Assembly: GCA_012026655.1 (NCBI GenBank)
Contig: JAAILG010001699.1
Span: 1 to 62,952 of the forward strand
DNA from: Hydrolagus affinis
Lineage: Eukaryota
Direction of reading: 5' to 3'
DNA length: 62,952 nt
The notes below the pieces were generated by a model. It ran no database searches, was not told the origin of the DNA, and saw only the letters and a list, made by a program, of their open reading frames with translations. Made by a program: the position numbers and the translations under genes. Positions 638 through 57,720 of the stretch are shown piece after piece (position 1 is the stretch's first letter; every line of letters starts with the position of its first letter).

Positions 638-1620
638 GATCATGTCTTCTGGATTGATGGACAGAATGAAGCTCTCTATGGTGCCAGTAAGCTAACGGGA
701 GAGAATGTGGTGATTTTAGCTACCAACCTCAAAGAACCTCGGGACATCATTGTATACCATGAACTAATTCAGCCACCTGGTAAGAGCTCTAGCATGCTGA
801 AACATTTAATGGAACGAAACTTGATTACAAACTTCTCAGTTTGTAAACACTTGACATTTCTTCATTGTAGCATATTGTGTCGCTCTCCCTCAAGACAAAC
901 CTATTTAAATGCTATTATCTCAATTGTGCTTGTCTTCAGTTCATAGACATTTCTCTTTGACTGTGTCTACAGTAACCTATGCCCTCATTCTTGGTTCATC
1001 TTAAGCTCTTCCATTGTTGTGCACCCTGACACTGCCCTGCATGAAGGGTACTATCTGATTGGCAGCTGTATCAGTACTGTAAATCAGGTTAACTCAAACC
1101 TCATAACTGAGGTATGAATGCAACTTGCTCCAGTTGTGTACAGTACTTCAAACCTACATAGTATTTCTTGTGGGTAGGTTGGTCATATGTCTTGATCAGC
1201 ATAGCACTTCTTTCCCTTTTTCCTCCACACCCATACCACACATACACAAATAATTCACTGTCTCTCCAAATTTATAGCACAATTGTACTCTTTAACCACT
1301 TTAGTGGTTCATGTCTTACCTATGGCAACATCCATCTACTAGTGTATAGCAGATCAGTTCTTCTTTCTGAAATCTATTTATTTTTGTTCACAGGCACAAA
1401 CTTAGTTTACATTAATTGAATAGTTTGATTTGAACTGTGCTCTAGATAATCTATTGATTTTGTTCCACAGGCACAAATTGGTGCAATGAGGGTGTTAAGA
1501 ATGGCGGCTGTGAATACCTGTGTCTCCCCGCTCCTCAGATCAACAGTCTGTCCCTAAAATACTCCTGTGTGTGTCCCCCTGGGATGCAATTGAAGGCAGA
1601 TGGGCAAATGTGTACAAATG
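638..1620 (+). CDS. Module 0 (partial): last propeller exon and EGF-C exon of an upstream ectodomain module
   Basis: Exon 638-779 ([15 protein letters not shown]...VYHELIQPP, 142 nt) and exon 1471-1620 ([25 protein letters not shown]...CTN, 150 nt). The rest of the module lies before base 1. Confidence 0.9.
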
Positions 1621-4600
1621 GTGGGTTCTGCACTTTGCTACAATTCAAAGATAATCTAATCATCTGGATCAATTCAACTCATGAAGATATACAGTAGGCC
1701 ACAACTATGAAGCAGATATTGATATTGCAGTACTTTTCCTTAATATTTCTCCAAATAGTAGACATTAATATGTAATCTGTGGTAACTTTTGAAAGAAACA
1801 GAAGTAAGTTTTGCTGACATGCAGGTTTTGCAGTGTTGGAGCAGACTTCCCGTGAGACGTGTGACTTTGGTTTCAAGTTTGACATCTGCCTGTTCACTAA
1901 TGTCTATGATGTTTAAACATCTTGTCCTCTTTCTGCGTTTGAAAGCTGTAAATAGATTTCCAGACCTGGAGTTGTCTTAATTAACATTAAATTCATGTGA
2001 CTTATTTGAATTAAGTATTAAGAACTGTCAAGGAAACAGTGAAGAGAACTGGGTATGGAGATGGAAGCTCTCCTGGCATTGTGCTTAAGTTGAAGTTGGC
2101 TTAGGGCTGCCTTCTCTGCTGCCAACACTTCAAAATCACTGTTGTGGTTTCCATGTGCCGTATCCTAAATGCTCCTATAGCTGAAGTAAAATGATTTGGA
2201 AAATGGGGAGAGAAAACCAGGCAAAATGATTTGGGGAGAAGAGATAAAAATGGGGCATGGTGGCTGAAGGCTCGGCCACCAATGGTGGGACAGAGCAAAA
2301 TGAGGAACTTTCATAATAGCATTTCTATATTGTTATATTCCATAGGAATTATGTACAGTATTCCTTTACTCAAAGATAATTTTTTTCTGAATCGTATCAA
2401 ATTAGTGTCCAACTTTAAATTGGATTGATTCCAGTAGCTGCATGTGGTACAACCTTCTCTTCCCCCCACCCTACCCCCAATTTGTCTCTTCAAATGCTCA
2501 GGAACCAATCTTCCCATTTGCCCCGCCTGGTTTAATTATCCTATTCCTTTTCTCCTGTCTGTAGTGTCCTTGCTGTTCCATGCTGTAGGCAATATTTGTT
2601 TACTTCCTGATCAGTTGGCTATTCCATGAATGGCCACATTTACGGCATTAGTCATGCACTTAAATTTTTAAAATATTTGCAATTGAAACCAGTCTTCGAT
2701 CTACCCATTACTAAAGCTCCCTGTGCAGATCTGTTCCTATGCATTTCATCAATTGATTATAACTGTGGAGTGACAGCTTGGTAATGAAATACAGAAGATC
2801 ACTTATCATTCAAGTGTAAACTGAATTGAGCTGGAAATATTTAGATGCGTAACATCTAAAATAAGGCATTAAATCCAGGTTCTTGATTATTTCCTAGCAA
2901 GTCATGGAAAATCACACATTCTCACTGGAAGGGAGATTTTAGATTTAAGTTGGCACTATTTGGATGGATAAGCTTTACTATGTCATAATCTGCAGCACAA
3001 TAGTAAAATCTAGGACATCCCGCCCACTAGATGAGTTAGTTGTGTCCAAATTAGAAGTGGCAATAAATAATGCTGAGAACTGTCAGCCTGTTGCTCCATC
3101 TGCTTTACAATTGACTTCTCATAATGGAGGAGTTGGAAACCAAAGATGATTGATGAAGTGACATTGCTACTGTTCTCTTCCTCCTCATTGTTTTTGCCAT
3201 GTTTATTTCCCTGCATTCTATAAGCAAATGCTAATTAATGTTGCTTTGCCGGCAACAAATGTTCAAAACTTTTGATTTGTAGAAGGTTGAGAGAGCTTTA
3301 AGAAATCTTATTTCAAGCCAGTGAGTAAAAGTTTCTCATATCAAATCAACCACAGATGTCCTTTCTTGCCCCCCATTGAATTATGCTAATTGGAGAAAAA
3401 ACAATAGGTGTAGATTTTTGTTGTAATCATCATCTCCAAAATATGGGGTGGATTACATGCATTTGACTCTTCACAGCTACTCTTCCCTCCCCTTCTGCTC
3501 CAAATAGTTCAAAATAGTGGTATGAAGATGAGGGGTGTGAGATGGCGCAGCATACAGCTTACATTGTATTTTAACTTTCATATTTTCTCGGTCGTAAGAA
3601 ATGTTTTAATCTTGTGATGTTTCAGATAGCAGTAGATGCCATGTCAATGAATTCAGCTGTGGTCCTAGATCTATTCGTTGTATTCCTGTCTCCTGGAAAT
3701 GTGATGGAGGAAAGGACTGTGATGATGGCAGTGACGAGGATGATTGTGGTAGGCTCTTAAGAGTTTAGTTATGAATCTTTTTGAAATGGTGGTGAATGTC
3801 TAGGAGAGCAACTTCATCTAAAACACAGTTGTCATAGTAGTTTCAAGTTGCCAATAAAGATGAAACTAAGCATGTGACTACTTGAATTCAGTGATATGTT
3901 TCTAAACTCTTATTGGATTAACATCAACAATGGACCAATTTTTAAATCCCTGCCCAGCCTTACTGAACATTAATTATTGAGTGTTAACTTTCATGAAGGC
4001 GGATAGAATAAACCTCTGGATCTAGCTGATTGAATGGAACACTAAGTACATAAAAAAAATTCTTTCTATTCTTTGAAATGAGATCAACAAACTCATCAAA
4101 GACAGCTTGGTTCTATATGAATAGGACCTATCCATTCAGATTAGCTTCACCCTTCTGCCTTAAATCAAAGGAAATCTTATATTTTAGCTTATTTTCCCTA
4201 TATTTCTCATAATTCAAAAGTATTCAAAGATCCTATCGAAGAGCACACCCAAATTAGAATTTACATAGTGATGAAGCAAACCTTGTATCAAATGGTCTGG
4301 TTTAATTTTATCTTTCAGCCCAGCCTACTTGCAATCCATTAGAGTTCACATGCTCCAGTGGCCAATGTGTTTCCAAGACCTATGTCTGCAATGGGGAGGA
4401 TGACTGTGATGATGGAAGTGATGAGCAAGGTTGTAGGACACCTACCTGTGAGCCACATGAGTTTCAGTGTAATAATTTGGAGTGTATCCCACTGTCCTGG
4501 GTGTGTGATGCCAAACATGACTGTTCAGATGAGTCTGACGAATCTGCAAGCTTCTGTGTGCGCACCCTTTCTCCTGTAACCTGTTCTCCTCATGACTTCC

Positions 4601-7600
4601 AGTGTAGTTCAGGTGAATGTACTCATGAATACTGGCGCTGTGACGGAGACACCGACTGTAAAGATGGAAGTGATGAAGTGAACTGTCGTAAGTAGCTTTA
4701 TTTTCTGTCCGAGGGAACCTTTTTATGTATTTCTGAAGTACAGGCTATCATTAAATATTTCCCTGTGCACTCAGTTGATGTGAGTTATATTGAGTGCAGT
4801 GACTATAACCCCATAGACTTTCTGATCTTTAAATCTGAAGAAATGCATTTTCCTTCTGTAAATCTTGCACTCTTGTTACTTCAAACTGAGGGATTGCCTT
4901 CCAATTCTTTCAATTTGAAACCTTTCCATTCTTTGAATGAATGTTGTGTCTCGCTTCGTGAAAACTGGGTCACCTATTTCAAATTGATGTTTGATAGTAG
5001 CATAATGCAAACTTTTGTTGGAGCAATAAGCCAAGGAGGCTGCTGATGGGACAATGGTTCTGCTTGGGGAAACCTGGCTGAGATGTACTTGCTTAGATCA
5101 GGCTGGCGCTCCAACGCCTTGCTGCGGGAGTGTCACATTGTCTGCAGTAGCATCCTTTGGAACGAGATGTTAAATCTATCATCTGCCTGAACAGGCAAGT
5201 GAGATTTCAAGATCCTGAGGTGCTATTTGAAAAGATGATGGTTTCTCCTGATGACATTTTGTTTATTTCTTGGATTGTTGTGACTTTTATCCTGATTTTT
5301 CAGCTACTCAAACATGTAGACCAGATTACTTTAGATGTGATGACGGCCACTGTATTCGTGGAGGAAGGAAATGCGATGAGTTTAAAGACTGCAATGATGG
5401 CAGTGATGAGGTCAACTGCAAGAATGGTGAGCACCCAATTTAATGAAGCAAAGTGAGGCTTTCAGTTTCAAAGGCGTTCGGTTTGACCTTTGTTTTTTTC
5501 TCTGCAGTTTCAGAGTGCAAGGAACCAAATAACTTCAGGTGTCAAAGTGGAGAATGTATAGACATCACCAAAGTGTGTAACCATATTCAGGACTGTAGGG
5601 ACTGGAGTGATGAGCCCTTTAATGGATGTAGTAAGTGCTTAAGGCTTGCAGTTATTGTTATCAGTTTAATCATAGAGCAAAGTCTCAAGTATGTTGTATA
5701 TCATGGAAGTTGATCTTTGATCTGTCAATTTTCTAAACATCTTGATCACACAGCAGTTTAATGTTGTGCCTGGTGGGGTACTGAATGGAGGAAAACAATT
5801 GCTTTCCCAGAGGACTTGTTCAGTGACCACACTTTCAGCTACTATGTCCCAAAACTCTGGAACACTCTTCATCTATTCCTTCACCTTGCTCCTTCCTTTC
5901 CATCTTCAGGTCATGCTAGAAAACCTTCCTGTTTGACCGCTGGTGTGTGTTCCCTCTTTAGAGAAAGGCGCACTACAAAATTATTAAGGCAGTAATGATT
6001 CCTTTTCTGCTGTTTGAATCTGGGACTCGAGTTTTAAGATCAATTTCTATTTAATCAGTTGGCTTTGCTGGCAAAAAGCCTTGTGTGTGATTATCGAGTC
6101 AGAAGCCATCGTTGCAACCAACTAATTTTTGTAAGGGTTAAGGCTACCAAAGGCTGTTTTGCCATGGTTTTTGTTAATAAATGTGATATCTGATTTTTTT
6201 TTCTGCTCCCCAAAAGCATTTGAAACCATTTCGCCCATAAATATACAGTTAATTCTGTGAAGCACTTTGAGACGTCTAGAAGATGTGAAAAACGCTGTAT
6301 CAAATGCAAGGATAATTATTATTATTATTGTATTGAAATGTGAGGCTTCTCTTTCTAGAGGTGAATGAGTGCCTGGTGAACAACGGTGGCTGCTCTGACA
6401 TCTGCAAGGATCTGGTCATTGATTACGAATGCGATTGCCCACCTGGTTTTGAGCTGGTTGATGGAAAGAACTGTCGTGGTAAGTTGGCCGATTCATAACC
6501 AGTTTCAGAAGATTTGACCTCTGATAATGAAACACTAATCCATTGCAAATTCTCTCACAGATATTGATGAGTGTCAAAACCCTGGAACTTGCAGTCAAAT
6601 TTGTATCAATTCAAAAGGAAGTTATAAATGTGAATGCCGTGCAGGATATCGCATGGATCCAGCTTATGGGCTTTGCAAGGCAGTAGGTGGGTATGTTTTT
6701 AACAAGCAGTGACTTTCACCTAAACTCTATTGCCAATTGCTATAGGTACAAGTCTATGGGTGCTGGGAAAAGCCCACTTGTACGTGATGGATGATTAGAA
6801 CTGTTGCCATTCCTTACCTAAGTCTCTAATTCTGTATTTCACCTGTCTTGTATCTGATGCAAATCCAACCAATTTTTCCAATTGCCTATCTATTATGATA
6901 ATTGCCACTTCTATAGTATTAGCCCAGTATTAGTCCCATTTTAATATTGATTTACAACACTGTTCACTTGACCATGTTGTAAGGCATGGATAAAACCAGT
7001 CCCAATATGTGGACTGACCCTTCTAAATTATTAATCCAATTGAATTTAGCTCCTAGGGAATTATAGATAATGCAACATGAGTATTTTGTTGCAGATTCCT
7101 GTAGAGTACACACTGGAAAGCATTGTGAATGCAAACGTGTTGAATATCAATGGCGATCTTGATCTTTTTATATCACATATAAAGTACCAATATAATTTTA
7201 ATTTTGCTCTTCACAAATCACTGGCAAGAGTATTTCAGAATTCACGATGGGAATGAATAACCTTGGAACTAAATCTTTGACCTTTCTGATAGGAAAGGAA
7301 CCCTACCTGATCTTCACTAATCGCCATGATATCAGGAAACTGGGACTCCACCACAAAGAGTACACCCAGGTAGCTGTGCAGCTGAGAAATGCAGTAGCAT
7401 TAGATGCTGACATTGCTGCACATAGGATCTTCTGGGCTGACTTGGGAGAGCAGGCCATTTTTAGGTAGGTAAATACTGAACAGCAATCGTAATCCTGAAG
7501 CTACAATACTGTAGCAATACTGTAAGTATACAATTGCAATACTGTAACGCCCATCGACAATACTGTCCTATCTGTTAACTTCTATCTGTTTTCTAGAAGA

Positions 7601-10600
7601 TTCCTTGTGATAGTTAAAGCACAATGTTGTGGCTATGTGGGGGCTTATTTAAACATATAATCAGGCTTAACTTTAAATGATTATGATGCTTCATCCAAGC
7701 CTGTGCATAACTGAATTTATTAAAACCTTGTGCAGCCGCTTGTTTATCTTCATTCCAAAAAACTTTGAACTTGTATCTGTGCACTGTATGACAATTTATT
7801 ATTATTATCATGGGCTTAAAGTTGATGCATTTGACACTGATCTAAGAGACTAGTTTAAAATAATCCAACCATAACCATATCACTTTGCTTTCTGCATGTA
7901 CAGTATGCCAATTTAGTCTTTACAAAACATTTTTCAGAAGTTTTGTTAGTTGAGTAAACTAAAATTAAATTGCTCTTATGAGCAGTTTCAACATAGTGTA
8001 CAGAATTAGATCTTCATGCTATGCACTTTTATTTGCAGCATGTCCATGAATAAGTGGGAAGGCACAGCTGGTATACTCAGACCGGTCAAGGTTGCCCAAA
8101 TGCCTGTGGGAATTGCTGTAGACTGGATCTACAAACACATCTATTGGACTGATCGTGGCACTAAAACCATATCTGTGGCTACCTTTGATGGAACCAAGTC
8201 AAAGATGCTTTTTGACACTGACTTGAGGGAGCCAGCTTCTGTAGCAGTTGATCCAATAACAGGGTACTGAACATTCCTATGGATGAATGTGTCTTGGTTG
8301 AATATAACATGCGATGCCTTTGTTTAGATAACAAAACATGACTAATTACATATCTCATTGTGCTATAAGATTGCAGGCAAATATGTTGAGTTTGAAAACT
8401 CTAATATTAGAGTATTAGGCTGGGTCAGCAAAATAAGCTGAGGGGAAAGAACTTACTAGGATTTTGTTTTTGAAAATATTTATTTATAAATATATTTATG
8501 ATATGAATCCAAAACCAAATACAAGACAGAAAAAACGCACACAGATTGTGCACAGATTTTTCCGGATACGCTTCCTTTAAACAGTTGGGAGTTGCTCCTG
8601 TGTGCACCGTGATCATATTCATTCCCATGCACACCCTGAGAAGATTACCTGCCATTTTCGGAAGGTGTCCTAATGTGCACCATGGTCTATTTTACATACA
8701 TTTCTGGACGTTCTTTGGTTACACGTTGAGCGTCCTTCTGTACCTTTATGCTTTTGCTTTAAAACCCTGTTTTGGGGCCACTCATGGACTACCCAGTAGG
8801 TGCGCCCTGAGTGCTTTGTGCAGGAAAGTCTCCTGCCAGGGTCAGGCCCCATCTGGCCTTCGCCACAGCTCATCCAAATTTCAGCTTGTCCCTCAGAACA
8901 TACTCCCTGATCACCAGGTTTCGGGAATGGCAAAGGGCTTCCTTTACCGAGTTTATGATCTTTCAGGCACACTCAATGTGGATTTTGCTGTGAGTACCTG
9001 GGAACAGCATCGAATGCCGCAACAGTGGGTCCCCAGGGACGAACTGTGAGAGTATCCACTCTATCTTGCTCCAAATGTTTTTGCAAAACTACACTCCAGG
9101 ATGAGATGGTCCATGGTTTTCTCCCCTCTGCAGTCAGCCCAAGGGCAGTGAGCTGACTCGCCCAGACCTCAATTGTGCATGAAAGCCCTGAGGGGAAGGG
9201 CCCTTTAAATCACCAGCCAGGCCCTGATGTTTGTTGGTCAGGATGGGTGACAAGGCATTTTGCGATATGTAGCTAGACATTGCCTCAGGCTATTTCCCAA
9301 TCTCCCCCTATTGAACCATTTCAACTACCTGTCGTGTGAACCACTTAGTGATTGCGCGGGATCTGGAATGGTATGTTATAGGAAACTCTCTATGTGGGGC
9401 TGGTGTTTCGGCACGCTCCAACTGTGTGGAATGTTTTGAGCCAGTTCTGCCAGACCCACCTTTGTTAGCACTGGGTACAGGTAGAAACCCAGTATGTACT
9501 TGCATTTATTGCCGCCGTAGCGGGTCTCCGGACACAGCCTCAGGCAACCATACACAAAGATGGCCATGAGGATCAGGGATATGTTGGGGATCCCTTTTTC
9601 CGCCCTTTCTCTGGGGCTTTGTGCATCATTTTCTGTGGGAAGAATACATCTTGGATCCTAACCCCACCCCCCTGATCAGTTGGGAAACCTCTCTGATGCC
9701 TGCAGTGGCGTTGTTCTTAGTCAAAGGCCAGACTTGGGATAGTAAAACCGAGAGGGCTTTACACTTTATCAGTAAGGTCTTACCCATGATGGACGGTGAG
9801 CACTGGCACCACGTCACCAATATTTTTTCCTCACTATGTCTAGGTGATCCTCCCAGCTTTTTGGTATGCCCCAGCAGCTCCAAACTAAATGCCAAGCACT
9901 TTGATGTAGTCTGGCTTCACCACTAATGGTAGGTGGCTGTGTTCTTTCCAGTTTCCAAAAATACATCATCTCGCTTTTCTGCCGGTTAACCTTGGCACCA
10001 GAAGAATCAAAACAGATGCAAATGTGTAGCAGGCTTGAGGCCAATTTTTGGTCTGTACAAAAGATGATGACATCATCATCCATATACAGAGAAGCCTTGG
10101 TTTGTGAGTTGTGGCTGCCCAGGATGGCGGCACCTTTGATGCTTTCGTCCCTCCTGATGGCCTGCGCAAAGGGTTCAATGGAGCTGACAAAAAGGGATCG
10201 GGGACATCCCTGCCTGACTCTGCCCCAGGATCTGTCTGGCTCAGCCCTGGGATTTGTTATTGGGAAGCGCTCTGAGAGGCTGTACATCGTGGAGGGCGCT
10301 ATATAAATCCAATTTGTTGTTATTGCCAAATGGGGAACATCTCTGTCTTGTACTGTTTACTGTGACTGTGTTACAAATGTCTGTGTAGAGCTGCTGGATC
10401 CACTTGCATATTTCCTCCCCAAAGCCCATTTTGGAGAGTATCTCATCCATGTATCTGTCAGATGCCTGAAGAAATTACTAGGATAGGCAAAAGCCAGGTA
10501 GGTACCATTGGCATTATGGGGCCAAGGAGTTGATAACATTGCTTTACTTCCCTCAACAAGATCACCTTTTGCTTTACATAAGGTGGTAAGTGACCAAAAG

Positions 10601-13600
10601 TTAACTCAATCTAAGTTTGTACATGAAAACCTTTGCTTACAAAATTATCCATTATGTTGCAGGTTCATTTACTGGTCTGACCTGGGAGAACAAGCTGCCA
10701 TTGAAAAAGCAGGAATGAATGGTGGTCATCGCCAAGTCCTGGTTAACACCAATATTCAATGGCCAAATGGCATTGCACTTGGTAAGTTACATTTAAACCA
10801 ATAGAGGGAGCACTTTTCTAATGTTTCACATAAATAAAGCCTGGTTTCTTCACTATTTCCTTCACAGATCTTGTGAAAAGCCGCCTCTATTGGGTTGACT
10901 CTAAACTGCATATGGTGTCGAGTGTGGACTTAAATGGTCAAGTTAGAATTGACTTCTTCTCCCAGTTCCTCGTTCATCCTTATGCTGTAGCATTATATGA
11001 GGTGAAATGTTTTTGGCTGGAAAAAGTTGGAATCAAAGTAGGATGTGAACTGTTATACGTTGTATGATGAATAGCTAAATTTTTGGGGGTCATTTCTTTT
11101 ATAAAATTTTTAAAAATTAGATTCTAAGAAATTGTAGATTTTCACAAGCTTTTTCATTAACATATTAAAGTTTGATTGTAAATTTTGAGCAGAGTGAAAG
11201 CTTTATCTTAAGTACTGTGCTTAAGATTAGATCAACTTCAACAGATCCTTTCCTATATGTGTGTAATATTATGAATTGAGTATTCTGAAAAGCCAGATAG
11301 ACGCAATATTCTGTTCCTATTCAGAACAGATGGCCTCTGAATAGTATTTAGCCCAACTGAACATTCAATTGTAGCAATCAACAAATAATCACAATTCGAG
11401 CACTGGTTAAATGAGACTTGCCTTGGAATAAATTGTGATTTTTTTTGTCATAGGATCGTATCTTCTGGAGTGATGGGGAGAATAACACCATCTATGAAGC
11501 CAACAAATTCACAGGAGCAGATGTGTTTGTTTTAGCTTCTAGCCTTAAAGAACCTCGGGGCATTATTGTCTATCATGAGCTGATGCAACCATCTGGTAGG
11601 AATTCAAATCTGACATGTAATATTTAACGTTGCTTTTTAAAGTGTAGGAAGATGATGCCCATCTTTCCTTAAATTAAGCCATTCATACTGTAGTTCCATT
11701 TTCTCTCTTCACCACCCCCCCCGCCCCACCAGTCTGCTTTACTGTTTAACTAGGCAAAACTGGTGACTTGCACCAATTAATTACTTCAGTGTCGTGAATG
11801 GGCTTGGCATTTTACTTTGTGCTATACAAGATTCCACACATCGTGATTTAATATCACTGAATGCTGCCTTGAGTTGATAGATGCTACCGTTTTTTTTTCC
11901 CATCCATGCCATTTTAATTGAATATCTACTGATGTTTGTCTATGCTGATTTTTCTTTTACCTTCTGCTCCATTTCACTGGAGCAGATATGTGTTTTTTAA
12001 AGTTAATATCCAATATTTAATATTGGAAGATCCCTTCAAAGTATTGGTCATTGTTGTGTCTGCTAGATTGTGTAAAAACAGGGCATCACTAGGAATTGGA
12101 AGTGCGGGGATATGAATAGCTTCTGATTCTCTCTCCAATATTATCTCTGAAGTAGAGCTCGGGTTCATCCATGCAATTTACCTTGATTTGCCATAAAATT
12201 GAATGCAATAACAGAAGAGATAGTTGAGCAGTAAATATGCTTTTCATTTATTAAATTTGATAAATTCTTCACTGATGAGAATTAAAGCAGAAAGTTGAAC
12301 TGATCTTGATGCTCAATCAGTCCAATGAACCACAATACTTGCTAATATTTACAGCATTAATTGACCTTCAAAACATCTACTTTCAAACTAGCTTTCGGGA
12401 ATCCTGCTCTGAATCTCAAGATAGACTCCAGTTTTTAACTCAGTTCTATCTACTACAGGGCTAGCTCAGACACACTCAGTGCTGGTTCTATAGATCCATA
12501 CTAACCATAAGCAGTGTTTCCAGTAATGACCAGCTGGCTTTCTGTATTGAAAATGACAACTTTGGGCTCTAAGGACACTGTCAATGAGATGCAGGAAGCA
12601 AGTTGCATCTGAACTATTGGACACTGTTTCTATGTTCCTAAAGCCATTCTTTAGATTTATCTTCCTCTCTTCATACACACATTCTAGTTTTTTTGTAAAA
12701 AAAACTCTTGTTTACAGGCAGAAACTGGTGCAGTGAGAGCTTGCAGAATGGAGGCTGTGAATTCCTGTGTCTCCCTGCTCCTCAGATCAACATTCATTCC
12801 CCAAAATACACTTGTGTCTGTCCATCAGGAAGGAACCCAGATAAAGGGGAACCATGTGGAACTGGTAAATATTTTCAGGTTTTTTCCCCACTTCGCTCAC
12901 ATCCTGCACTCCTTCCAAAAGCTGCATGGTTAATTGATTGAGTATATCCAGATCTACTTACAGTACACTACTTCCAAAACCAGTCACGGCTGTCATTGTA
13001 TTTGAAAAGCAGACGAGCTAGTATCATCTAGGGGTAAAATTTAAGAATGAGCATTTACAAGCATGTGTATTATAGCTGGTGTCAAATTAGAACTAAAGAT
13101 TGAATGAGAAACTATTGTCTAGGTTTAATTCCTAATCAGTCTTGTTAATGTTCTAATTGATGCCATGCTTCATGAACAAAACCGATGAATTGGCACCATC
13201 AACTTCCAGTTCCTAGTTGTAAAGTGTTACTAGTAAGGTAACTGTACGACTTCTTCACCAGCCAAGGCTACTTGTGGAGCATCTGACTTCAGATGCAACA
13301 ATGGACAATGTGTACTTGGGAAGTGGCGGTGTGATGGGAAACCTGATTGCAAGGATGGGTCTGATGAAAATCCAGAACTCTGTCGTAAGTATCCCCATAG
13401 GAATGAGATTGTGAGTTATTTGTTCTCTGTAAATGCTCAAGCATTCAGAGAGCCTACAATGCATTGGGTAACACTAGTTCTCCTCAGTGTCTGCACAATC
13501 TAGAATCGATATCTTGATCCTGGGAAGTCTTTTCAGTGACTGCAACAGCAATTGCTGTCTCAAGCACATGTAAGGACTATTCCTTTCTGAGTATCTTGTA

Positions 13601-40600: not shown

Positions 40601-43600
40601 GTTAACTGTGATGAGTTCCTGAAAATCAGTTAGATTTGCTTCTACTAATTAACAAATCTTGTGATGTATTGCAAATTAATTTAGATCACATTTATTTAAA
40701 GGAACTGTCTTAACTTTCTTTTACAAAAAGCTTTTGTTTTCCCATTCACCTCGTTTTAGGCCACCTCACTTGCAGTCCAGTAGAGTTCACATGCTCTAGT
40801 GGTCGATGCGTTTCCAAGACCTTTGTCTGCAATGGGGAGGACGATTGTGGTGATGGAAGTGATGAACAAGGCTGTGCAGCATCTCCCTGTGGCCTGCATG
40901 AATTTCAGTGCAACAATTCTGAGTGTATCCCTGTGACCTGGGTGTGTGACCACAATGCTGACTGTACTGATCAGTCTGACGAATCTCCAGGGCACTGTGG
41001 ATACACACTTCCCCCTCCTATGTTATGTTCTTCAAGTGAGATGCAATGTGATTCTGGTGAATGTATCCACCGGCAATGGTACTGTGATGGTGATGCCGAT
41101 TGCAAGGATGGATCTGACGAAATTGACTGTCGTACGTAGTTTGTTTTTACATTTCAATGCTCCTGATACTTTCAGACGTGCTCTGTTCACTCCCTGCTCT
41201 GATGGCTGCGATTCACTACTGCTCAAGTTCACCCAGATCTTTCTTGATGGGAAACTTCTGTTCCATGAGCACAAAATATTTTGTATAGAGCCTTGTATAT
41301 TGCAAAGTATTGTTGCTAACAGCTGCGATGTGAATGACTAATCTGAATTTTCATTAGGAGCAGGGATTCTTCTGCTTCAACTACTCTTAACACCGCAAGT
41401 CAAATCCCTGTTGGGTCGTGTAATCCTAGCAGCAGGAAACAGTGCTTTAGATGGCAAGCCATTGCAGTATTAACTCCTTAAACCTCAGCAGAATCCAATG
41501 CACCCTCTGGGATCCCAAAGCCTTGGCTCTTGCCAACTTGTGTTTAAAATAGTCCGAAGCTGGGCAAGCAGGAAGACTCCCTCTGCGGAGAGAGAGACCC
41601 TTGAATTTCTATGTGTACAAATGCATGCACACATGCAATGCTGTTTAGTTTGAATGGTGATTTCCACATGTCAGACCCTGGTTAACCAAAAATTGTTGTC
41701 CAAGGCACCAGGAGCAACTTTACCTTTTCAATATATTCTGTGAAGCTCTTTGAGACATCTAGAAGACATGAAAAGCACAACATCAAATGCGAGGAATGTT
41801 ATTATCTTCCCTTGTTTAGTACTTCGCTTCTTTCACCAATGTTTAGTAACCTTTCTCTTCGACCGCACCTTTAGTCACCTTTCTACCCCTGCCCCTGGCT
41901 CGGTCCCGGGATCCGCTATTGTGAAGCGCTCTGAGATGCCGTTCGGCGTGGAGAGCCCTATATAAATTGAAGTTGTTGTTATTGTTAACAGTCCAAAGGC
42001 CAAGTGCATAAGTGATAAATTCGGATTATACCTAAATATGGATTATACCTGGAGTCCTGTAGCTCAGTGGTTAGAGCACTCACCTTACAAACGTGAGACC
42101 CGTGTTTCCAATCCAGGCAGGTTCACATGCAAAACCTTGGGCAAGTTTCCATGCTCTACATGCCTAATAATAATCCCTCCATAAATTGTTCATTTTCAAT
42201 CCTGTTTGTGGAACACTTCTTTGCCAAATTGGCTTCCATGTTTCACCCACAAATCTAGTCAATTCACTTTACAGTATATTCCATGAAGCGCTTTGAGACG
42301 TCTAGAAGACGCGGAAAGCACTATATCAAATGCAAGGATCATTTATATTGTTAGAGTAAAACTTCTCTAGTTGGGAATAAGGTTACAGCCAGCCTCTATC
42401 CCTTAATAGGTTCTTTATTCAGGTTTGCTCAAGGAGCTGACACTAAAGCATATAAAATGACTACAAGGCACAAACAATACACTAGGTTTCTCATAATGCA
42501 ATCTCATACACCAATATACTACCTGGCACGCATTCTTCAGGTTAAAAGGGAATAGTCCTTTCTCTTCCTTGCCTCCTTCTTCGAGGTCTGGGGTGGGAGT
42601 AGTCCTTTCTCTTCCTTGCCTCCTTCTCCGAGGTCTCGGGGGTGGGGGTTGCCTCTTCTCAGTTGGTCTTGGGGAAAAGTAGTCCTTCCTCCTCCTTGCC
42701 TCCTCTCAGTCGGTCTCAGGGAAAAGTAGGGATGTTGATCTCTTTGGGGGTCTGCTGTCATGTTACAGCTCTTCCATCAGTTGGTTCCCTTTCTCGAGAG
42801 CGGTTTGGCTACTGTCAGTTACAGTTTCTTCCATCAGTTGATTCTCCTTCTCGAGAGCGGCTTGGCTACTGTCACGTTACAGTGTCTTCCATCAGGTCCT
42901 TCTCCTTCTGCTCCTCTGTCTCCGCTCTGCTCTATTCCTTTGTCTCAACACTTTTATCCTTTCTTGGTCGCATGGTGTTCACGTGAACATCTCATGCCAC
43001 TCTCAGACATTCTCCGTATTCCACGTCCTCTTTTACACCCAACTCTGCCTTTCTTCGCAAACGAGCTCTTCTTATCGCAGTCTGTTCTAATTGGTTTCTA
43101 ATGGTGACCTTGACGACTCAAACTATGTGTAGCAACTTCCTTTATCTTATACAGCAGTTATACAAAAACATCACATGGCATCATTCTAGCCCACTCTCTG
43201 TTTTTAACAGTCTGTACTAATTTTAACCAGTTCTTCACCAACCTTAACAGTCCCCACCTTGATACCGAATTAACATGAGGTATCACACAATCTTTATACT
43301 TGTTTGTATACATAATCCCTTTCTTTCTGAACACCGGGGTCGTGATGCAACGCGTCAAACAAATCTTCAGAACATTAAACAATACGCAACAAACTAACAA
43401 TATCACTATCATTAATGCATGCAAAAGCCAACCACTCCATTATTTCTGTTCCCTTCCGATTATTCTTTTACTTTGTTCACCCTTTTCGCCTATTCCCTCT
43501 TATCCGATTCTGCCTCGGGTCTCAATATCGCATTATGACCTAAGTCTTCACTTTTGGAGTTTACCTGTCATCTACCTCTTGTGATGACGCTCAATTACTG

Positions 43601-46600
43601 GGTTTACCTGTCATCCACCTCTTGTGGCGACGCCTAAATTATCTTGTGCCCTGTATATTTCACTTCAACACAATATTACTTTAGTGTCACCTGAATCCTG
43701 CCAACTACGCCAATTGTTAGAGATTAATTTCTCAGGTTGAAAATATCAATTTCTCCGGTCAAAAATTAGGTTACAGCCAGCCTCCGATTGACCAAGTACT
43801 ACTGATTCATTTCTTTTAAAGCAGGTTCTTTATTCAGATATGCTCATAGAGCTGGTGCTAAAGCATGTTACACAAATGGATACACACAATTCTTCATACG
43901 ACCGAGCCTCAATCGGTTCCGCAATTGTATTATCACCTAATTTCAATTTCTGGACCTTCCCTACCAGCTTCTTCTGGTAATCCAGCGCCCAGTTTATATC
44001 CCCCATATCTTATCTTGATCGATCCTTTACTCTTATTCTATTCAGCTATGCTTTAGCACCACCCGAGTCCCTGTTCAGGCGCCAATTGTTAGAGTAAAAC
44101 TTCTCTAGTCGGGAATAAGGTTACAGCCAGCCTCTATCCCTTAATAGGTTCTTTATTCAGGTTTGCTCAAGGAGCTGACACTAAAGCATATGAAACGACT
44201 ACAAGGCACAAACAATACACTAGGTTTCTCATAATGCAATCTCATACACCAATATACTACCCGGCACGCATTCTTCAGGTTAAAAGGGAATAGTCCTTTC
44301 TCTTCCTTGCCTCCTTCTTCGAGGTCTGGGGTGGGAGTAGTCCTTTCTCTTCCTTGCCTCCTTCTCCGAGGTCTCGGGGGTGGGGGTTGCCTCTTCTCAG
44401 TCGGTCTAGGGGAAAAAGTAGTCCTTCCTCCTCCTTGCCTCCTCTCAGTCGGTCTCGGGGAAAAGTAGGGGTGTTGATCTCTTTGGGGGTCTGCTGTCAT
44501 GTTACAGCTCTTCCATCAGTTGGTTCCCTTTCTCGAGAGCGGTTTGGCTACTGTCAGTTACAGTTTCTTCCATCAGTTGATTCTCCTTCTCGAGAGCGGC
44601 TTGGCTACTGTCACGTTACAGTATCTTCCATCAGGTCCTTTTCCTTCTGCTCCTCTGTCTCCGCTCTGCTCTATTCCTTTGTCTCAACACTTTTATCCTT
44701 TCTTGGTTGCATGGTGTTCACGTGAACATCTCATGCCACTCTCAGACATTGTCCATATTCCATGTCCTCTTTTACACCCAACTCTGCCTTTCTTCGCAAA
44801 CGAGCTCTTCTTATCGCAGTCTGTTCTAATCGGTTTCTAATGGTGACCTTGACGACTCAAACTATGTGTAGCAACTTCCCTTATCTTATACAGCAGTTAT
44901 ACAAAAACATCACATGGCATCATTCTAGCCCACTCTCTGTTTTTAACAGTCTATACTAATTTTAACCAGTTCTTCACCAACTCTAACAATATGACCATTC
45001 CAATTGCACAAACTCTGTTTGCTACAACAGTTAAGAATGATGATGGTTTACTTGATTGGCTGTTGATAGCAAAACTTCCAAGTATGGGACTGTAATCTTC
45101 AGTACCTATGCTCATGATTTCAGCTCCTCGAATCTGCAAACCTGATCAATTCAGGTGTAATGATGGCAGCTGTATTATTGGAAGCAGTCAATGCAATGGA
45201 ATTGGAGATTGTACAGATGGGAGTGATGAAGTCAACTGTGTGAAAGGTAAGTTTGTAATTGCATTGTACTAGTGACCTGCTTGTGAATTTCTTATAATCT
45301 GACCCCATTTCTAATGGAATTTAATGTCTGATTTTAGCTCAAGTGTGCAGACCTGATCAATTCAGGTGTGGTGATGGTATCTGCATTGTTGGAAGCATGC
45401 AATGCAATGGATTTGGGGATTGTGCAGATGGGAGTGATGAAGTCAACTGTGAACTGAGTAAGTGTACAATTGCACTGCTTCAGTGACTAATCTTGTGGTT
45501 GTTACTGCAACATAACAAAATTCATTTTTCCTTTCAGCTGTTGCAAAGTGCACAGGACCTGCTAACTTCAAGTGTCTGAGTGGAGAATGTATAAATATGA
45601 CTCAAGTATGCAACCAACACCAGGACTGTAAGGATTGGAGTGATGAGCTACTCAAAAAATGTTGTAAGTAATTTGGAAAGTGTCAAAAGTAACATGAGCT
45701 TGATTTGTACTCAATCATATTTACTTTCCCTACTTTTTAACTTAACTTTTACTGATGTAGAACATCAAATTGTATTTGTATCATTCCTTTCACACTAGGA
45801 CTACCCCAAGGTGTTGAACAATTAAGGGTTTGGACCGAAGCAGGGGATTGAGATCAGGAGGGGTGAGGGTGGGAGGGAGGGCAGGAGTAGGAGGGCCAAC
45901 AGAGGTGCAGTCAAGGAAGTGTTTTGAGACGTGCCTTATAATAATAATAATCCTTGTATTTGATATAGTGCTTTTCACATCTTCTCGATGTCTCAAAGTG
46001 CTTCACTGAATATACTGTAAAGTGAATTGACTGTATATTTGTGGGCAAAATGCAGCAGCTAATTGCACACAGCAGTGTCCCACAATAGTTGTTCTTTGAA
46101 ATGACCAATTTATTATAGGATTTTTTTGGGATGGATTATTGTTAGGCATGTGGAGAAAGCAAACTTGCCCGAGGTTTCACCCTGATCTGCCTGGATTCGA
46201 AACACAGGTCTCACGCTTTTAAGGCGAGTGCTCTAACCACTGAACTGCAGGACTCCACTCCTTCAAGGAGTCAAGGGAAGGAATGAGGTGAAGATTGGGA
46301 TTCATTGACCAATTAATTGATTTGTTTGCATTATCCTTTTTGTAGACATCAATGAATGCTTGGACAACAATGGTGGCTGCTCTGACATCTGCTGGGATCT
46401 AGTCATTGGTTATGAATGTGAATGCCCTTCTGGCTTTGAGTTGGTTGAAACCAAAATGTGTGAAGGCAAGTCAACTGATCCTGTTTCTTGTACAGTAGTG
46501 AAAAGAAAACAGATAACTTATAGACTGAAAAGATATTGTAACTTTTCTATGCAGATGTTGATGAATGTCAAACCCCTGAAATTTGCAGTCAAATCTGCAC

Positions 46601-49600
46601 CAATATAAAAGGAAGCTATATATGTGAATGCCATGCAGGATATCACATGGATCAAACAGATGGGGTTTGTAAGACATTAGGTAAGTAAAGATGATGGACA
46701 TTGTAATAATAATAATCCTTACATTTGATATTACGCTTTTCACATCTTATCAACGTCTCAAAGCACTTCACAGAATATACTGTAAAGTGAATTGACTGTA
46801 TATTTGTGGGTGAAACGTGGCAGCCAATTGCGCATAGCTGTGTCCCACAAACGGTCGTGGATTGAAAATGGCACATTTTTATTATTGTGTTTTTTTTTGG
46901 ATGGATTAATATTAGGCATGTGGAGTAAGGAAACTTTCCCAAGGTTTTGCTCTGGTCTGCCTGGATTCGAACACAGGTCTCTCGCTTGTACGGCAAGTGC
47001 TCTAACAACTGAGCTACAGGAGCTCCACATTGGACAACTATCTTGCATTGTTGTTGACTTTTCCATCATTTTCATGATCGGTTGATTTAAGGTTAATTAA
47101 TCAATTAATTTTTCAGTATTTACTGTGCAGTGAGTAATAACATGTATCTATCATGTAGGATAACAACCTTCTACCTTTGTATATAACAGCCAATTTGTGC
47201 ACAATGATGTTCTTCAAACAGCCATGAAGGAAATGAATGTCCAGATTTTTATATCTGGAGATTGTTGGCTGTTACACCTGTCTACGCATGCTTCCTGTAT
47301 ATTTTGGAGTAGCTCAGTAGTTAGAGCACTCGATGATTCCCGGCCAGGGCAAAATGATGGGCAAGTTTCCTTACTCCACACACCACTGTTTACCTAGTAC
47401 CTGTAGTAAGTAGAAACTCGGTTGCTAGTTGATTGGCAAATTGCTTTTCCAGGGCGTAATAACTCCTTTTTTTAAAAAGTCATTCAATCCACAACTGTTT
47501 GTGGGACACTGCTGTGTGCAATTGGCTGCCACGTTTTGCTCACAAAATATTCTGTGAAGTGCATTGAGACGTCTCAAACATAATAATATGCTATATGAAC
47601 TGGAAAAATTGTTATTTTGCATTACTCTTGCGTTCACTTTGCTCGATCTTTGATTCATTCACTCTTTTCTGATTTAGATGTTCATGTTTATTACAACATT
47701 AATGATCCTACCATCTCTGTAAATCCGATTTGTTAATTGGAATCCAGAGGAGCAAAACTTAAATGGCATGGCTGTAATTTGATGCCTGACCGTTCAGATT
47801 AAAAATGAATTGATATAGTGCCAAGATTTTTAGAATACATACCTTCAAATCAAATCATTGCATCACAGAAAATAAATTCCTTCAATATAAATGCTCCTTA
47901 AATCAAGAATGATTGATCTGTAAATTGTATTGAATAGGAAAAGAGCCCTTTTTGATCTTCACTAATCGCCATGATATCAGGAAACTGGGACTCCACCACA
48001 AAGTGTACACCCAGGTAGCCGTGCAGCTGAGAAATGCAGTGGCGTTAGATGCTGACATTGCTGCACAGAGGATCTTCTGGGCTGACTTGGGAGAGCAGGC
48101 AATTTTCAGGTAATTCAAGCTATGAATGCTGAGCCACAACTAGGTTTCCTTCAACTGTATAATGTGCATTCAGCACAACACTAACAGGGGTGATTGGAAA
48201 TTTGCTATTCAAGTCAACTTCCTTTTCATCTTTTCTTTCCCAACCACCCCAGATATTTACTACTGCTGCTAATTTGCTTCCTGGCCAGCAGATATACTAA
48301 TTTGATCGCTTAGTGAATGCTGGATGAATCCATTGCATTGGGTAGTTCTGTGAACAAACATAATTCAGTCATGTCTAGTAGTTGCTATCACTTCTGAAAA
48401 TCCTCCAGTCTTTGGCTAGTTACAGAAATCACAACCTGATTCTGTCCTAATTAGTGATACCTTGCACCTTTCCTCACCTATTTACCATTCATTGCTCACT
48501 ATATAATACTATACTGCATTAATGAAAACAAAATTGGGTGCATTTGTTTATAAATCTTTCTCAATGCATTATTGTCAATATAATGTTCATTTGGAACTGG
48601 TGATAAATGTTACTAATGGGAAAACTTGTTAATGAGAGAGGCCAATGTGTTCACTGTCATTAATGTTTTCATCATACATATTTTGTTAATGGTCTTTAAA
48701 CTGCAATGCTATTACAACAATACCAACAGCAAAATTACACTTGTACAGTATCTTTCTTGTCAGAAGGATGTCCCAAGGTGCTGGACAGTTATTGTTTTAG
48801 ACCTGAGCTGGGGAGGATGGAGGGAAAATGGAGGGCATTTGCGTAGTCAAGCCGGGATGTAATGAAGGCGTGAATGAGGATTTCAGCGGCCTGAGGGGTG
48901 AGGTAGTGGCAGAGTCGGGCAATATTGTGGAGGTGAGGGAAGACAGAATGGGTCATGGCTTGGATATGGGGGAGGAAAGACAGTTGAGGATCAAACAAGA
49001 CACCTAGGTTCCTGACTGGCTTGGTGAGGCTGAGTGTGCAACCATGGAGATTGATGCTGCCAGTGCCTGATGCATGAAGGTGTGGCGGGAACCAATCAGG
49101 AAGGCTTCGCTCTTGTTAATGTTCAACTGTGGAAAGTTATCTCTCATCCAGGACTTGACATCCGACAGGCAGTCTGTCAGGACAACAGTGTTTCTGGAGT
49201 TGAGAGTAGAGGCAGAAAGATAGAGTTGGGTGCCATCCGCATACATGAGTAAGTTAACCCGATGTCTGCGAATTATGTCACCAAGGGGGAGTATGTAGAT
49301 GTTAAAAAGTAGGGGACCAAGGGCACAGCCCTTGGGACACCACAGGTGACAGTGCGGGGGCTGGAAGAGAAGCCGTTGGTGGCGACAAAGTGGAGACGGT
49401 GGGAGAGGCAAGATTAAAACCAAGCAAGGGAAGGTCCATGAAGATTGATCTGGGAGGTGGTGTAGCAGGATGGAGTGGTCAATAGTGTTGAAGGCAGCAG
49501 AGTCGTCAAGGAGAACAAGGGGGGCAGAGAGAGCCCTAATCGCAGACATTTAGAATGTCATTAGAGACTTTGACCAGGACTGTAGGAAGGGTTCAAAGAG

Positions 49601-52600
49601 GGAATGGTATGAAAGAAGAGTGATGCTGGGACTCAATGGTTCATTCCAGGAACTTAGAGAGGAATGGGAGGTTGGAGATGGGGCGGTAGCTAGAACCAAC
49701 CTAAGATGTACCAGCATTGAATTGGAATAAATAAAGCTTAGCTTTTCTAGAAATACACTGTTTCATTAAAGCTGGCGACCATTTAAATCTGACTGGATGG
49801 GTCTTGTAAAGGGAATGGTGACTAACCACTAAAACCATTTGGCAGTGTGTCCACAGATGAACAGGAAGGTGAAGTCGGCATTTCCAGAGTTGTCGACGTT
49901 GAGACGCCTGTGGGAATTGCTGTGGACTGGGTCTACAAACATATCTACTGGACTGATCGTGGAACTAAAACCATATCTGTGGCTACTTTTGATGGAACCA
50001 AAAAGATGATACTCATTGACACAGGTCTAAGAGAACCAGCTTCAGTAACAGTCGATCCAGCAACTGGGTACTTATTAACTGTTATTTTTTATGCAATTCC
50101 AAGAAATGCCTTGTACAGTTAAATATTTTGTTAGAAAATCTATCCATTAAATAAGTACAAAGTTTTAGTTGTGGCATGACTGCAGTGAAGGTCTAAGAAC
50201 CGATCCTCTGCCAATTAAACTGCTAATTATTCAGCGACTTGTGCTGTTTGTAGCAAGTCAAAGCAATGTATTCAGCCTGCAGGGCAAAGCAAAGCGAGGG
50301 ACTGTTTCCAGGCATATAAAATGCCTCTTGTCAGGGTTAGTGTGGCAACATTGGCTTTGGTCTACTGTATTCCGGCTGATAATGCAGGGAGATGATAGGG
50401 ATACAATGGGAGATTAACCAAGTTTAACCTGACTAACCTAATTTCGCAATAGAGATTTGTAGTCTGTTCGCAGTGGTTTACAAACCTTACCTTTGCTAGC
50501 TCTGTCAGCTTCCCTATCAATTACAGTGGTTGAAAGATCAAAGTTCTTCGATAGGAATAGTTTCTACTTGGATTAGAGTTCCCTGTCTTCAGGAATTTAT
50601 TGGTTAAATTCAACTAAATCCCAAATTCTCGGGCTTTGTCCTATGAAGTATGCTTTGAAGTTTGTATGGAGCATTTATTTATGTATTGGTGCCTCCCACT
50701 GAATTGTTTACATTTAAACTAAATTGGGAAATTGAAATGGTCACTCTATCCTCAAAGTGACAAAGCTGTTAATCTGCAAAATAGTTTTTGTAGTAATGCA
50801 GTAGTGATTATCGCCATGTTTGATTTAGCACTTCATGTCAAAAGGCCATCTCAGATAGCTTGGTGTAATAACTAACTAATCAGTATTGTAGATTAATGTG
50901 AAGTATGCAGTTGGAAGTGATAACACACCCTTGTATTCAAAGATTATTTGTAATTTGAACTTTTTTTGTCTTAAAGGTTTATTTATTGGTCAGACTGGGG
51001 TGAGCCAGCAGCAATTGAAAAAGCAGGTTTAAATGGTGGTGATCGCCAGCTCTTAGTTAACAAAAAGATTCAATGGCCAAATGGCATTGCACTTGGTAAA
51101 TAGAGTACTTTTTAAAAAAAAAACAAGGTTGAATCTTCATTTGCTGATGTTTGGCTTTGAAATAATTCATACTTTGCCTCCAGATTATGTGAAAAACCGC
51201 CTCTATTGGGTTGACTCAAAACTGCACACCTTGTCCAGTGTGGACCTAGATGGTCAAAATAGAAGAACAGTACTCCATTCGCCACAATTCCTTGCTCATC
51301 CTTCTGCTGTCTCATTGTTTGAGGTAAAGCGTAACTTTCCAAAACATGTGACAAAGTATTTCTTTAAAAGATTTTATTTAGTTTGATTATAATCAGCATC
51401 TAATGTCAAGCTATGTAGCCATATGTACAAGTACAACTAACAAATTGAAGAGATGGCTGAAAAGCATTAATACATTGATAAATTAGGTAATGTGTATAGA
51501 GGATATACACAGAAGTACAAGATTTTGTTATTAAATTAAGCATCTGTTTACATTTTAGGAGAGAGGAAAAATATGAGCCTTGAGTATCAGATGCAATGTA
51601 CATTTTAACAGTTCAAGCTAACAGGTCATTAATTCTACATTCATATGTCTAGAGAATTTTGGAAAATATGGCTTGCGTCCAATGTTTGTGCTACTTTTAG
51701 ATTTACTTATCATACTTGCAGTGCTTAACTGAACGAACTGTGGGCATATCTTTGTATTGCCTAAGGGAGTCTCTCTTGGAGAGCATTTGGTTTTCAGCAT
51801 TTTCCTGGAATAAAAACTTTGAATTGGTCTTCTCGTAGGATCGTGCCTTCTGGATTGATGAGGAGAGTAAAGCTATCTATGCAAGTAACAAGTTTACAGG
51901 AGAAGATGTGGTGATTTTAGCCTTCAACCTGAATGAACCTCGTGACATCATTGTTTTTCATGAGCAGGTTCAGCTATCTGGTAAGGGATTGAATAATGGG
52001 GAATTTTTGCTCCTCCTGAGAATCATCCTGATTTTCTATTGCATTGGATGGAATTTGTATGTGAGATACTTCAATCCTCATTGTTTTATTTACAGGCAAA
52101 AATGGGTGCACCAACTTTAAGAATGGAAGCTGTGAATACTTGTGTCTCCCCGCCCCTTTGTTTAATGGTCTTTCAGTAAAATATACCTGTGTGTGTCCAT
52201 CTGGAATGGAGTTGTACAATGGACTACAATGTAGAACGGGTAAGCAAGATTTATACCCAACTGTACAGAGAAATTATTTGATATTAAACTGAAGGTATGT
52301 TGAAGCGATATTTGTTGGTGAGGGTTTGCTTTGGTATCTTGAACTGAAAATTTCTATTTATCCCAAACTGACATTTTTAGATCTAAATATGGGAAGCAAA
52401 AATGCTGCCAATATATAACTCTACTGATGGCAAACTATAGATGGTTTGCATATTGCATTATACTGAATAATTATCAAGCTAATAAAATGTGCCATTTAAA
52501 GAAAATTGGATGCTGATGTTTCTCTACTCAGTTAGATGTGTGATGGTCCTATAGATCTCTAGTATTGCAGAGGGACTCTGGAATGGAGTTCCTGAGAACA

Positions 52601-55369: not shown

Positions 55370-55379
55370 ATAAAATAAA
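55369..55379 (+). promoter_or_regulatory. Two overlapping AATAAA polyadenylation-signal hexamers directly at the stop codon
   Basis: Sequence aagTAAataaaataaaa has AATAAA at 55369-55374 and 55374-55379. Use as a poly(A) signal is not demonstrated. Confidence 0.45.
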
Positions 55380-55519
55380 AATTCAGTTTTAAAGTATCTG
55401 GACTGTTTAATCGTTATATTTGATAGAATCAAATGGTGGTAAATATACTGAAACTATTGTGAGATTAACATTGCTGTGTCTCCTTTTAGGTGGATGTTAA
55501 ATGATCCCATAGACATGTA

Positions 55520-55825
55520 GAATCCTGCAGCTCAGTGGTTAGGGCACTTGGTTTACAAGCTAGAGACCTAGGTCCAATTCCAGGTGGGCTGAAACCTTGA
55601 GCAAGTTTCCTTATTCTACACAACTAATAATAATCCCTCAAAAAAATATTAAATTAGTTGTTTCAATCCATGAATGTTTGTGGGATACTGCTGTGTGCAA
55701 TTGGCTGCTGCGTTCCACCCATAAATCTACAGTCAATTCACTTTACAGTACATTCTGTGAAGCACTTTGAGACGTCTAGAATACGTTAAAAAAAAGTGCT
55801 ATATCAAACTGCAAGGATTATTATT
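55520..55825 (+). mobile_element. tRNA-derived SINE
   Basis: Same family head, core and tail. Confidence 0.78.
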
Positions 55826-57590: not shown

Positions 57591-57720
57591 TATAGGAAAA
57601 ACAAGTCGACTGCATAAGTTATATATTTACACACATGCACTCCCAATGTTGACTTTGTCTGCTATGCATTTTTCTCCCATTTGATCCCTCCTTTTTCCAG
57701 ACTACGCTATTGCTATTTTG

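Follow-up and report, generated by a model that had tools for sequence, protein, structure and literature searches.

A probable VLDLRc3-type concatemeric VLDLR gene in Hydrolagus affinis

When the whole ectodomain of VLDLR (the receptor for very low density lipoprotein) occurs several times in a row, does the locus encode one large receptor or a series of smaller ones? The question is raised by a 62,952-nucleotide stretch of DNA from Hydrolagus affinis (contig JAAILG010001699.1 of assembly GCA_012026655.1; hereafter the window), in which the VLDLR ectodomain had been predicted, from the sequence alone, to occur at least five times in tandem within a single receptor. We consider it very probable that the window contains the 3′ four-fifths or more of one concatemeric VLDLR gene of the VLDLRc3 type, from the holocephalan branch of the chondrichthyans. 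The reading as one gene is based on module joins that are in phase, a single membrane anchor, RNA over the second and third complete modules, ratios of nonsynonymous to synonymous divergence (dN/dS) of 0.19–0.28 between modules, and the five-module proteins of sharks.

The architecture is not new, as it was published in 2023 as VLDLRc3. According to the sections of Ohishi et al. (2023, PMC10015161) used here, cartilaginous fishes possess three tandem VLDLR genes, among which VLDLRc2 has three ectodomain units and VLDLRc3 has five; in the cloudy catshark, c2 and c3 are both expressed in the ovary only. The same sections contain the authors' proposal that the repeats bind several vitellogenin ligands at once. 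In the full-text literature, VLDLRc2 and VLDLRc3 were found in PMC10015161 only. The original prediction had warned that duplicates of this name might already be published, and the warning was justified: this kind of gene is described there, including the idea of yolk uptake. The present analysis adds an exon-level map in a genome of the chimaera lineage, which explains the concatenation through phase-1 boundaries, and RNA support, from a species that is not the catshark of the published work, for the removal of one inter-module spacer. It further adds a conserved Tyr-to-Phe change of the tail motif accompanied by a truncated tail, a lineage member with a different pattern of LA repeats, the recognition that the public models of the locus in Callorhinchus milii (C. 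milii) are chimeric or broken, and a hint of different copy histories in the two chondrichthyan lineages.

Exon chain and module content

On the + strand, 57 exons between positions 638 and 55369 chain in frame in the order: end of an upstream module (M0), four complete modules (M1–M4), a pair of exons rich in Ser and Thr, and a single membrane span followed by a short tail (Table 1). The chain totals 8748 nt, that is, 2915 codons and the TAA stop. All 57 exons have an AG acceptor, and the donors are GT in 51 of 56 cases and GC in the other five. The 57 exons contain no in-frame stop, and no stop codon arises at a junction. Each of the four module joins (1620>3626, 12864>13262, 21973>22583 and 33216>33885) runs from phase 1 to phase 1. 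The same phases apply to all module boundaries, to all LA exons, and to the EGF-A, EGF-B and EGF-C exons. The inter-module introns measure 2005, 397, 609 and 668 bp, exactly the gaps given in the original prediction. Splice sites were picked by a simple score together with homology between modules. In a six-frame scan of the window, the LA, EGF and YWTD exons were confined to the + strand. With the exons of module 1 as tblastn queries, each class of exon turned up a single time per module, in addition to the P5 and EGF-C exons of the upstream module. The predicted architecture, four full modules and the end of a fifth joined in frame to one stalk, one span and one tail, is therefore reproduced by a stop-free chain.

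Because the VLDLR ectodomain cassette starts and ends in phase 1, tandem copies splice head to tail in a single frame. We propose that the gene arose by intragenic tandem duplication of the whole cassette, which would keep the reading frame.

Table 1. Coordinates of the receptor exons and other features in the window
Feature	Position	Strand	Content	Basis
End of upstream module M0	638..1620	+	P5 638–779, EGF-C 1471–1620; remainder beyond window	tblastn, splice and phase check
Module M1	3626..12864	+	12 exons, 641 codons, 6 LA	Pfam, phases
M1 LA exons	3626–3748, 4319–4687, 5304–5426, 5508–5630	+		Pfam PF00057 six times
M1 EGF exons	EGF-A 6359–6478, EGF-B 6561–6686, EGF-C 12718–12864	+		Pfam EGF families
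M1 propeller exons	7293–7464, 8039–8263, 10663–10781, 10868–11001, 11454–11595	+		Pfam PF00058
Module M2	13262..21973	+	13 exons, 681 codons, 7 LA; GC donors after 17665, 18283	Pfam, phases
M2 LA1-type exon	13262–13384	+		
M2/M3 spacer	21974..22582	+	609 bp	behaves as intron
Module M3	22583..33216	+	12 exons, 643 codons, 6 LA; GC donors after 24132, 28236	Pfam, phases
Module M4	33885..52239	+	14 exons, 724 codons, 8 LA; GC donor after 46465	Pfam, phases
Retroelement open reading frame	37865..39049	+	within M4 intron 36987–40759; not receptor	Pfam RVT_1, E 7e-12
Two Ser/Thr-rich exons	52998–53066, 53165–53287	+	both phase 1	read from sequence
Membrane-span exons	53951–54022, 55245–55369	+	short tail with FENPVF; stop TAA 55367–55369	read from sequence

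The core of the LDL receptor family is present in full, with Pfam families PF00057, PF07645, PF14670 and PF00058 and a single membrane span, the span having been read from the sequence and the EGF and YWTD families having been confirmed by Pfam for module 1. All 27 LA repeats of M1–M4 score above the PF00057 cut-off, and both the number of repeats and the length of about 2915 residues agree with what had been predicted. An LA1-type repeat is absent from M1 and M3. In M4, an LAf-type LA exon is tandemly doubled (45124–45246, with the extra copy at 45338–45457 and a 91-bp intron between them), and it is this extra copy that brings the module to eight LA repeats, by a route unlike that of canonical VLDLR. 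All five GC donors read GGCAAGT, with the exon ending after the first G.

Two gaps filled with N lie inside the gene. The first (35069–35253) is located in intron 34008–36863, between the phase-1 LA1 and LA2 exons of M4, and the second (53361–53460) in intron 53288–53950, which separates the second Ser/Thr-rich exon from the first of the two membrane-span exons, both of them in phase 1. Since all four gap-flanking exons run from phase 1 to phase 1, the frame depends neither on the gaps nor on their estimated lengths. It is possible that a gap hides a further phase-1 exon; the visible parts of the two gap-bearing introns contain no LA remnant (best E 0.31).

Relationship to VLDLRc3, VLDLRc2 and other receptors

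The closest known system is VLDLRc3. The protein of Scyliorhinus torazame (S. torazame) named 'very low density lipoprotein receptor c3' (P0154) has 3423 residues and five modules, each bounded by an EGF-C domain, and five-module proteins also occur in Rhincodon (3489 residues) and Mustelus (3484 residues), where NCBI names them 'LRP2-like' and 'LRP1-like', respectively. The number of modules in these relatives was counted by an EGF-C profile. Labels such as 'LRP1-like', 'LRP2-like' and 'LRP4-like' mask the VLDLR origin of the shark genes. The window gene shares with VLDLRc3 the row of tandem ectodomain units (five in VLDLRc3, at least five here) followed by one stalk, one span and one short tail that ends early after FENPxF, the direct joining of EGF-C to an LA repeat, and a place in the chondrichthyan VLDLR clade beside VLDLRc1. 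It differs in sequence, its exons being about 69% identical to P0154, and in composition, since M1 and M3 lack the LA1-type repeat with which shark modules 2–5 all start, as judged by eye without a count.

VLDLRc2, represented by S. torazame P0157 (2165 residues, three modules when split by the EGF-C profile) and C. milii P0160 (2164 residues), has the same cassette and the same type of tail. However, it comprises three modules as opposed to at least five in the window, and over 23–26 residues the window tail is 40–43% identical to c2 tails compared with 56–64% for c3. On these grounds, and with the trees described below, assignment of the window gene to c3 is probable.

Canonical VLDLR/LR8 (VLDLRc1), the vitellogenin receptor of egg-layers, has the same order of domains: an LA cluster, EGF-A, EGF-B, a six-bladed YWTD propeller and EGF-C. 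The window modules are 63–72% identical to VLDLR ectodomains. The canonical receptor differs in having one module, the motif FDNPVY and a tail extended by an additional exon, which has no match downstream of 55369 or elsewhere in the window. Among the one-module receptors with solved structures, human VLDLR gave the best scores (265 and 90 bits), followed by LDLR (187 and 57 bits) and LRP8 (86 bits on the propeller exon). The matches to a single propeller-exon query were crowded by multi-propeller proteins and included neither canonical VLDLR nor LDLR nor LRP8; the top ones led to the concatemers of sharks and rays.

LRP1 and LRP2 (megalin) resemble the window gene in size, in the large number of LA repeats and in having several propellers. 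Their architecture is irregular and is not known to consist of a repeated whole cassette. The best per-exon matches to them average 46–47% identity, in contrast to 66–72% for the VLDLR concatemers, and their high scores against the PDB come from the summing of many repeats. Descent from VLDLR and not from LRP1/LRP2 clusters, as the original prediction had it, is thus supported. Teleost Lrp13, which binds vitellogenin, is likewise a lipoprotein receptor with additional LA repeats, but it is not known to consist of repeats of the whole ectodomain.

The nearest single protein is C. milii P0270, which is colinear with the window from the P5 exon of M0 through the EGF-B exon of M1 over eight exons, with 82–93% identity. 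Within this segment, the P5 and EGF-C exons of M0 are 88–89% identical to residues 162–258. In P0270, EGF-C passes straight into LA2 in a register that matches the join 1620>3626. P0270 is itself chimeric, as the last module and the tail of P0160, a different C. milii protein, make up its second half. P0287, a further protein of this species, is the orthologue of M0; it ends just after EGF-C, runs into an intron and holds a duplicated LA block. Both P0270 and P0287 are predicted models, not transcripts.

The history of the modules was studied by splitting 23 reference proteins into 48 modules and adding the window exons to the alignment as fragments; the 639 columns from LA2 to EGF-C were pooled per window module. 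Four trees were built: neighbor joining (NJ) with 200 bootstraps, a quick IQ-TREE run under a mixture model with 51 rows, FastTree on the same 51 rows, and a 29-row tree under LG+G4 with 1000 ultrafast bootstraps. One module of a chimeric model (Cmil_998_m2) was dropped from the maximum-likelihood (ML) trees and kept in the NJ tree. All trees were rooted on bony-vertebrate VLDLR, and LDLR and LRP8 were not included; the placement inside VLDLR therefore derives from the scores against solved structures and from PMC10015161.

In all four trees, the modules of the window and of the concatemers fall into one chondrichthyan group with VLDLRc1, and the union of the concatemer modules with c1 has a support of 100 in the NJ, quick IQ-TREE and 29-row trees. 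The clade of concatemer modules alone is supported at 99 by the Shimodaira–Hasegawa-like approximate likelihood ratio test (SH-aLRT) in the quick IQ-TREE tree, at 0.85 in FastTree, at 46 in NJ and at 42 in the 29-row tree. Within the sharks, c3 modules 1–5 and c2 modules 1–3 correspond one to one across species (support 98–100 in NJ and quick IQ-TREE). For the window, M3 pairs with the M0-type module of C. milii (94–99), M1 and M2 group with module 1 of C. milii P0160 in all four trees, and a clade of holocephalan modules only is recovered with 62 (NJ), 92 (quick ML), 0.94 (FastTree) and 44 (29-row tree). M4 has module 5 of shark c3 as its sister in the quick IQ-TREE (98) and FastTree (0.98) trees, with an NJ bootstrap of 46. 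As the 29-row tree drops two groupings of the larger trees, we claim no one-to-one orthology between modules.

In three of the four trees, the only modules that group with M1–M3 are those of C. milii, and modules 2–4 of shark c3 cluster together. The LA make-up also differs, being 6, 7, 6 and 8 repeats in the window versus a regular pattern in sharks. We tentatively suggest that the internal modules may have multiplied, or been homogenised by gene conversion, separately in the chimaera and the shark/ray lineages after their split, a history we hold to be possible rather than likely. Under such a separate expansion, at most the last module would be shared between the lineages. If true, the multi-unit receptor would have been repeatedly rebuilt instead of representing a single frozen ancestral invention. 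Whatever their origin, all modules are under purifying selection, with dN/dS between modules as given above and dS values of 0.72–1.08.

One gene or several

One test of the single-gene reading comes from RNA. Three poly(A) 'single cell' RNA runs (X2, X3 and X4) and a DNA-like run (X1) were aligned to 17600–23560. In X3, all 16 modelled exons of M2 and M3 in this region are covered, including all 10 M2 exons there and the first two exons of M3. The depth is 25–746 in the 15 exon-holding bins free of a high-copy repeat. Conversely, seven of the nine repeat-free bins that contain only intron or spacer have a depth of 0, five of these zero-depth bins being intron-only bins within the M2 portion, and the remaining two have 0.75 and 2. 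Over the M2/M3 spacer, the three full bins (21978–22574) show 0, 0.75 and 0, while the flanking bins reach 226 (M2 EGF-C) and 191 (M3 LA2), or about 306 and 309 per exon base. With near-zero depth inside and similar depth on both sides, the 609-bp spacer behaves as an intron; a 3′ end of M2 or a 5′ exon of M3 within it should have left cover. The first mates in X3 are almost all on the − strand, which fits RNA from the + strand in most stranded libraries. X3 and X1 share base differences from the window at 18645, 20970 and 21951, so the RNA is from the same species as X1.

The exon depth in X2 and X4 is at most 8, compared with 25–746 in X3, although the three runs are filed under one sample code. 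This roughly hundred-fold difference in cover suggests that a particular type of cell or a particular sample expresses the gene. The high-copy repeat is interspersed and flanks the P5 exon of M2 (20187–20783 and about 21150–21380); its word depth, which is in the thousands in each of the three RNA runs, reaches about 10 million in the DNA-like run X1.

Of the explanations that compete with one long receptor, the one that survives best accepts a single transcription unit and supposes that its main products are shorter receptors, formed by skipping whole modules. Skipping would preserve the frame, as every cassette runs from phase 1 to phase 1, and the public C. milii models do differ in module content. 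These models, however, look like annotation breaks, P0270 being chimeric and P0287 running on into an intron. Moreover, the depth per exon base is nearly equal to the left and right of the M2/M3 spacer, and within 17600–23560 none of the modules looks missing. We therefore regard predominant module skipping as unlikely.

It is very unlikely that each module is a gene of its own in a tandem array, or that the modules are decaying pseudogenes next to one intact terminal gene. The NCBI model P0287 does end after one module, and AATAAA or ATTAAA sites are present in the 2005-bp spacer (three) and the 668-bp spacer (one), with none in the 609-bp spacer. Yet 57 exons without a stop and the low dN/dS between modules speak against this reading. 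The membrane span and tail of the c1, c2 and c3 relatives have a single match in the whole window, at 55271–55348. The M2/M3 spacer is nearly empty with equal cover on either side, and each of the shark relatives has been annotated or deposited as one protein of five modules. The spacers contain no LA remnant better than E 0.31. The original prediction had stated that they contain no exon for a membrane span, a tail or a signal peptide: for span and tail this held, and for the signal peptide a search with N-terminal 45-residue queries gave matches only via their LA parts, the search being insensitive. A 25-residue hydrophobic open piece at 3157 lacks a usable start codon and was judged to be due to chance. 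On both strands of 55370–62952, no further exon of the LDLR family was found. With the phase-1 joins, the single anchor, the near-empty spacer in X3 and the purifying selection, the prediction that these are not separate tandem genes stands.

An artefact of assembly, be it a repeat that was collapsed or expanded or scaffolding over the two N gaps inside the gene, can practically be dismissed, given that the modules differ by about 30% in protein with dS of 0.7–1.1, that X1 contigs tile 17600–23560, and that the same architecture occurs in other species. Indeed, modules that are 67–71% identical in protein at such dS must be old copies and not a duplication made by the assembly. Two X1 pieces, 21208–22293 and 22265–23262, cross the M2/M3 spacer; X1 may be the window's own assembly sample and is hence not independent.

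Several points nevertheless weigh against a single VLDLRc3-type gene with a role in yolk uptake. The RNA test covers one of the four spacers (M2/M3). The predicted join is supported there by the near-empty spacer between covered exons, and in this respect the prediction fared well; direct evidence in the form of a junction-spanning read was not found among the 15 joints listed (1712 further), all 15 of which come from the high-copy repeat at about 20187–21380. Five GC donors are unusual. GC–AG introns make up about 1% of introns in vertebrates, so 5 of 56 modelled introns is a high number for a single gene; RNA covers both exons that precede a GC donor within 17600–23560, though it does not directly show splicing at these very sites. 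Beyond the window lie the gene's 5′ end and signal peptide, and with them its full module count. The window exons are 66–72% identical to every shark and ray concatemer. While the per-module trees placed the modules with c2 and c3 beside VLDLRc1, as predicted, the pairing of M4 with c3 module 5 differs between trees: M4 is not sister to that module in the 29-row tree, and orthology to c3 over c2 is weak. Finally, in the sections of PMC10015161 used here, ligand-binding tests are left by the authors to future work.

Stalk, tail and predicted function

The two Ser/Thr-rich exons (52998–53287) presumably encode an O-glycosylated stalk. They have no database match. The two exons resemble copies of each other, having identical first codons after the acceptor and both ending in TCCAGAG before the gt of the donor.

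The tail of the window gene does not carry the canonical cytoplasmic motif FxNPxY; it reads FENPVF, with Phe replacing Tyr. VLDLRc1 relatives retain FDNPVY and a longer tail. In the c2 and c3 relatives, the motif is FENPxF and the stop follows 3–9 residues later. Counted over the window and every c2/c3 relative seen (P0001, P0002, P0152–P0154, P0157 and P0160), the protein ends 3–15 residues after FENPxF. Judging from these sequences, the Tyr-to-Phe change with a truncated tail is family-wide in c2/c3 relatives, and as their tails all end soon after the motif, the position of the stop in the window fits the family. Two AATAAA motifs overlap in 55369–55379, beginning with the final base of the stop codon; with them, the 3′ untranslated region could be very short.

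We predict that the gene encodes a type-I membrane receptor about 3400 residues long with five ligand-binding LA clusters, each of which would have its own propeller. In LDLR, the propeller drives the release of ligand in acid, and Phe can substitute for Tyr in the internalisation signal. We propose that FENPxF would act as such a signal. If the substitution works here as it does in LDLR, endocytosis is plausible and phosphotyrosine-dependent signalling is not. The receptor may serve the uptake of vitellogenin or lipoproteins by the oocyte with several ligands bound at once, as proposed in the sections of Ohishi et al. used here (PMC10015161). A receptor of LRP size assembled from repeats of the whole VLDLR ectodomain would bear on the yolk loading of the very large eggs of cartilaginous fishes.

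Within M4, the intron with the retroelement holds a second open reading frame (39445–40116, 224 residues), which gave no Pfam match. The preceding RVT_1 frame sits in the same 3.8-kb intron, between the LA2 and LA3–5 exons of the module.

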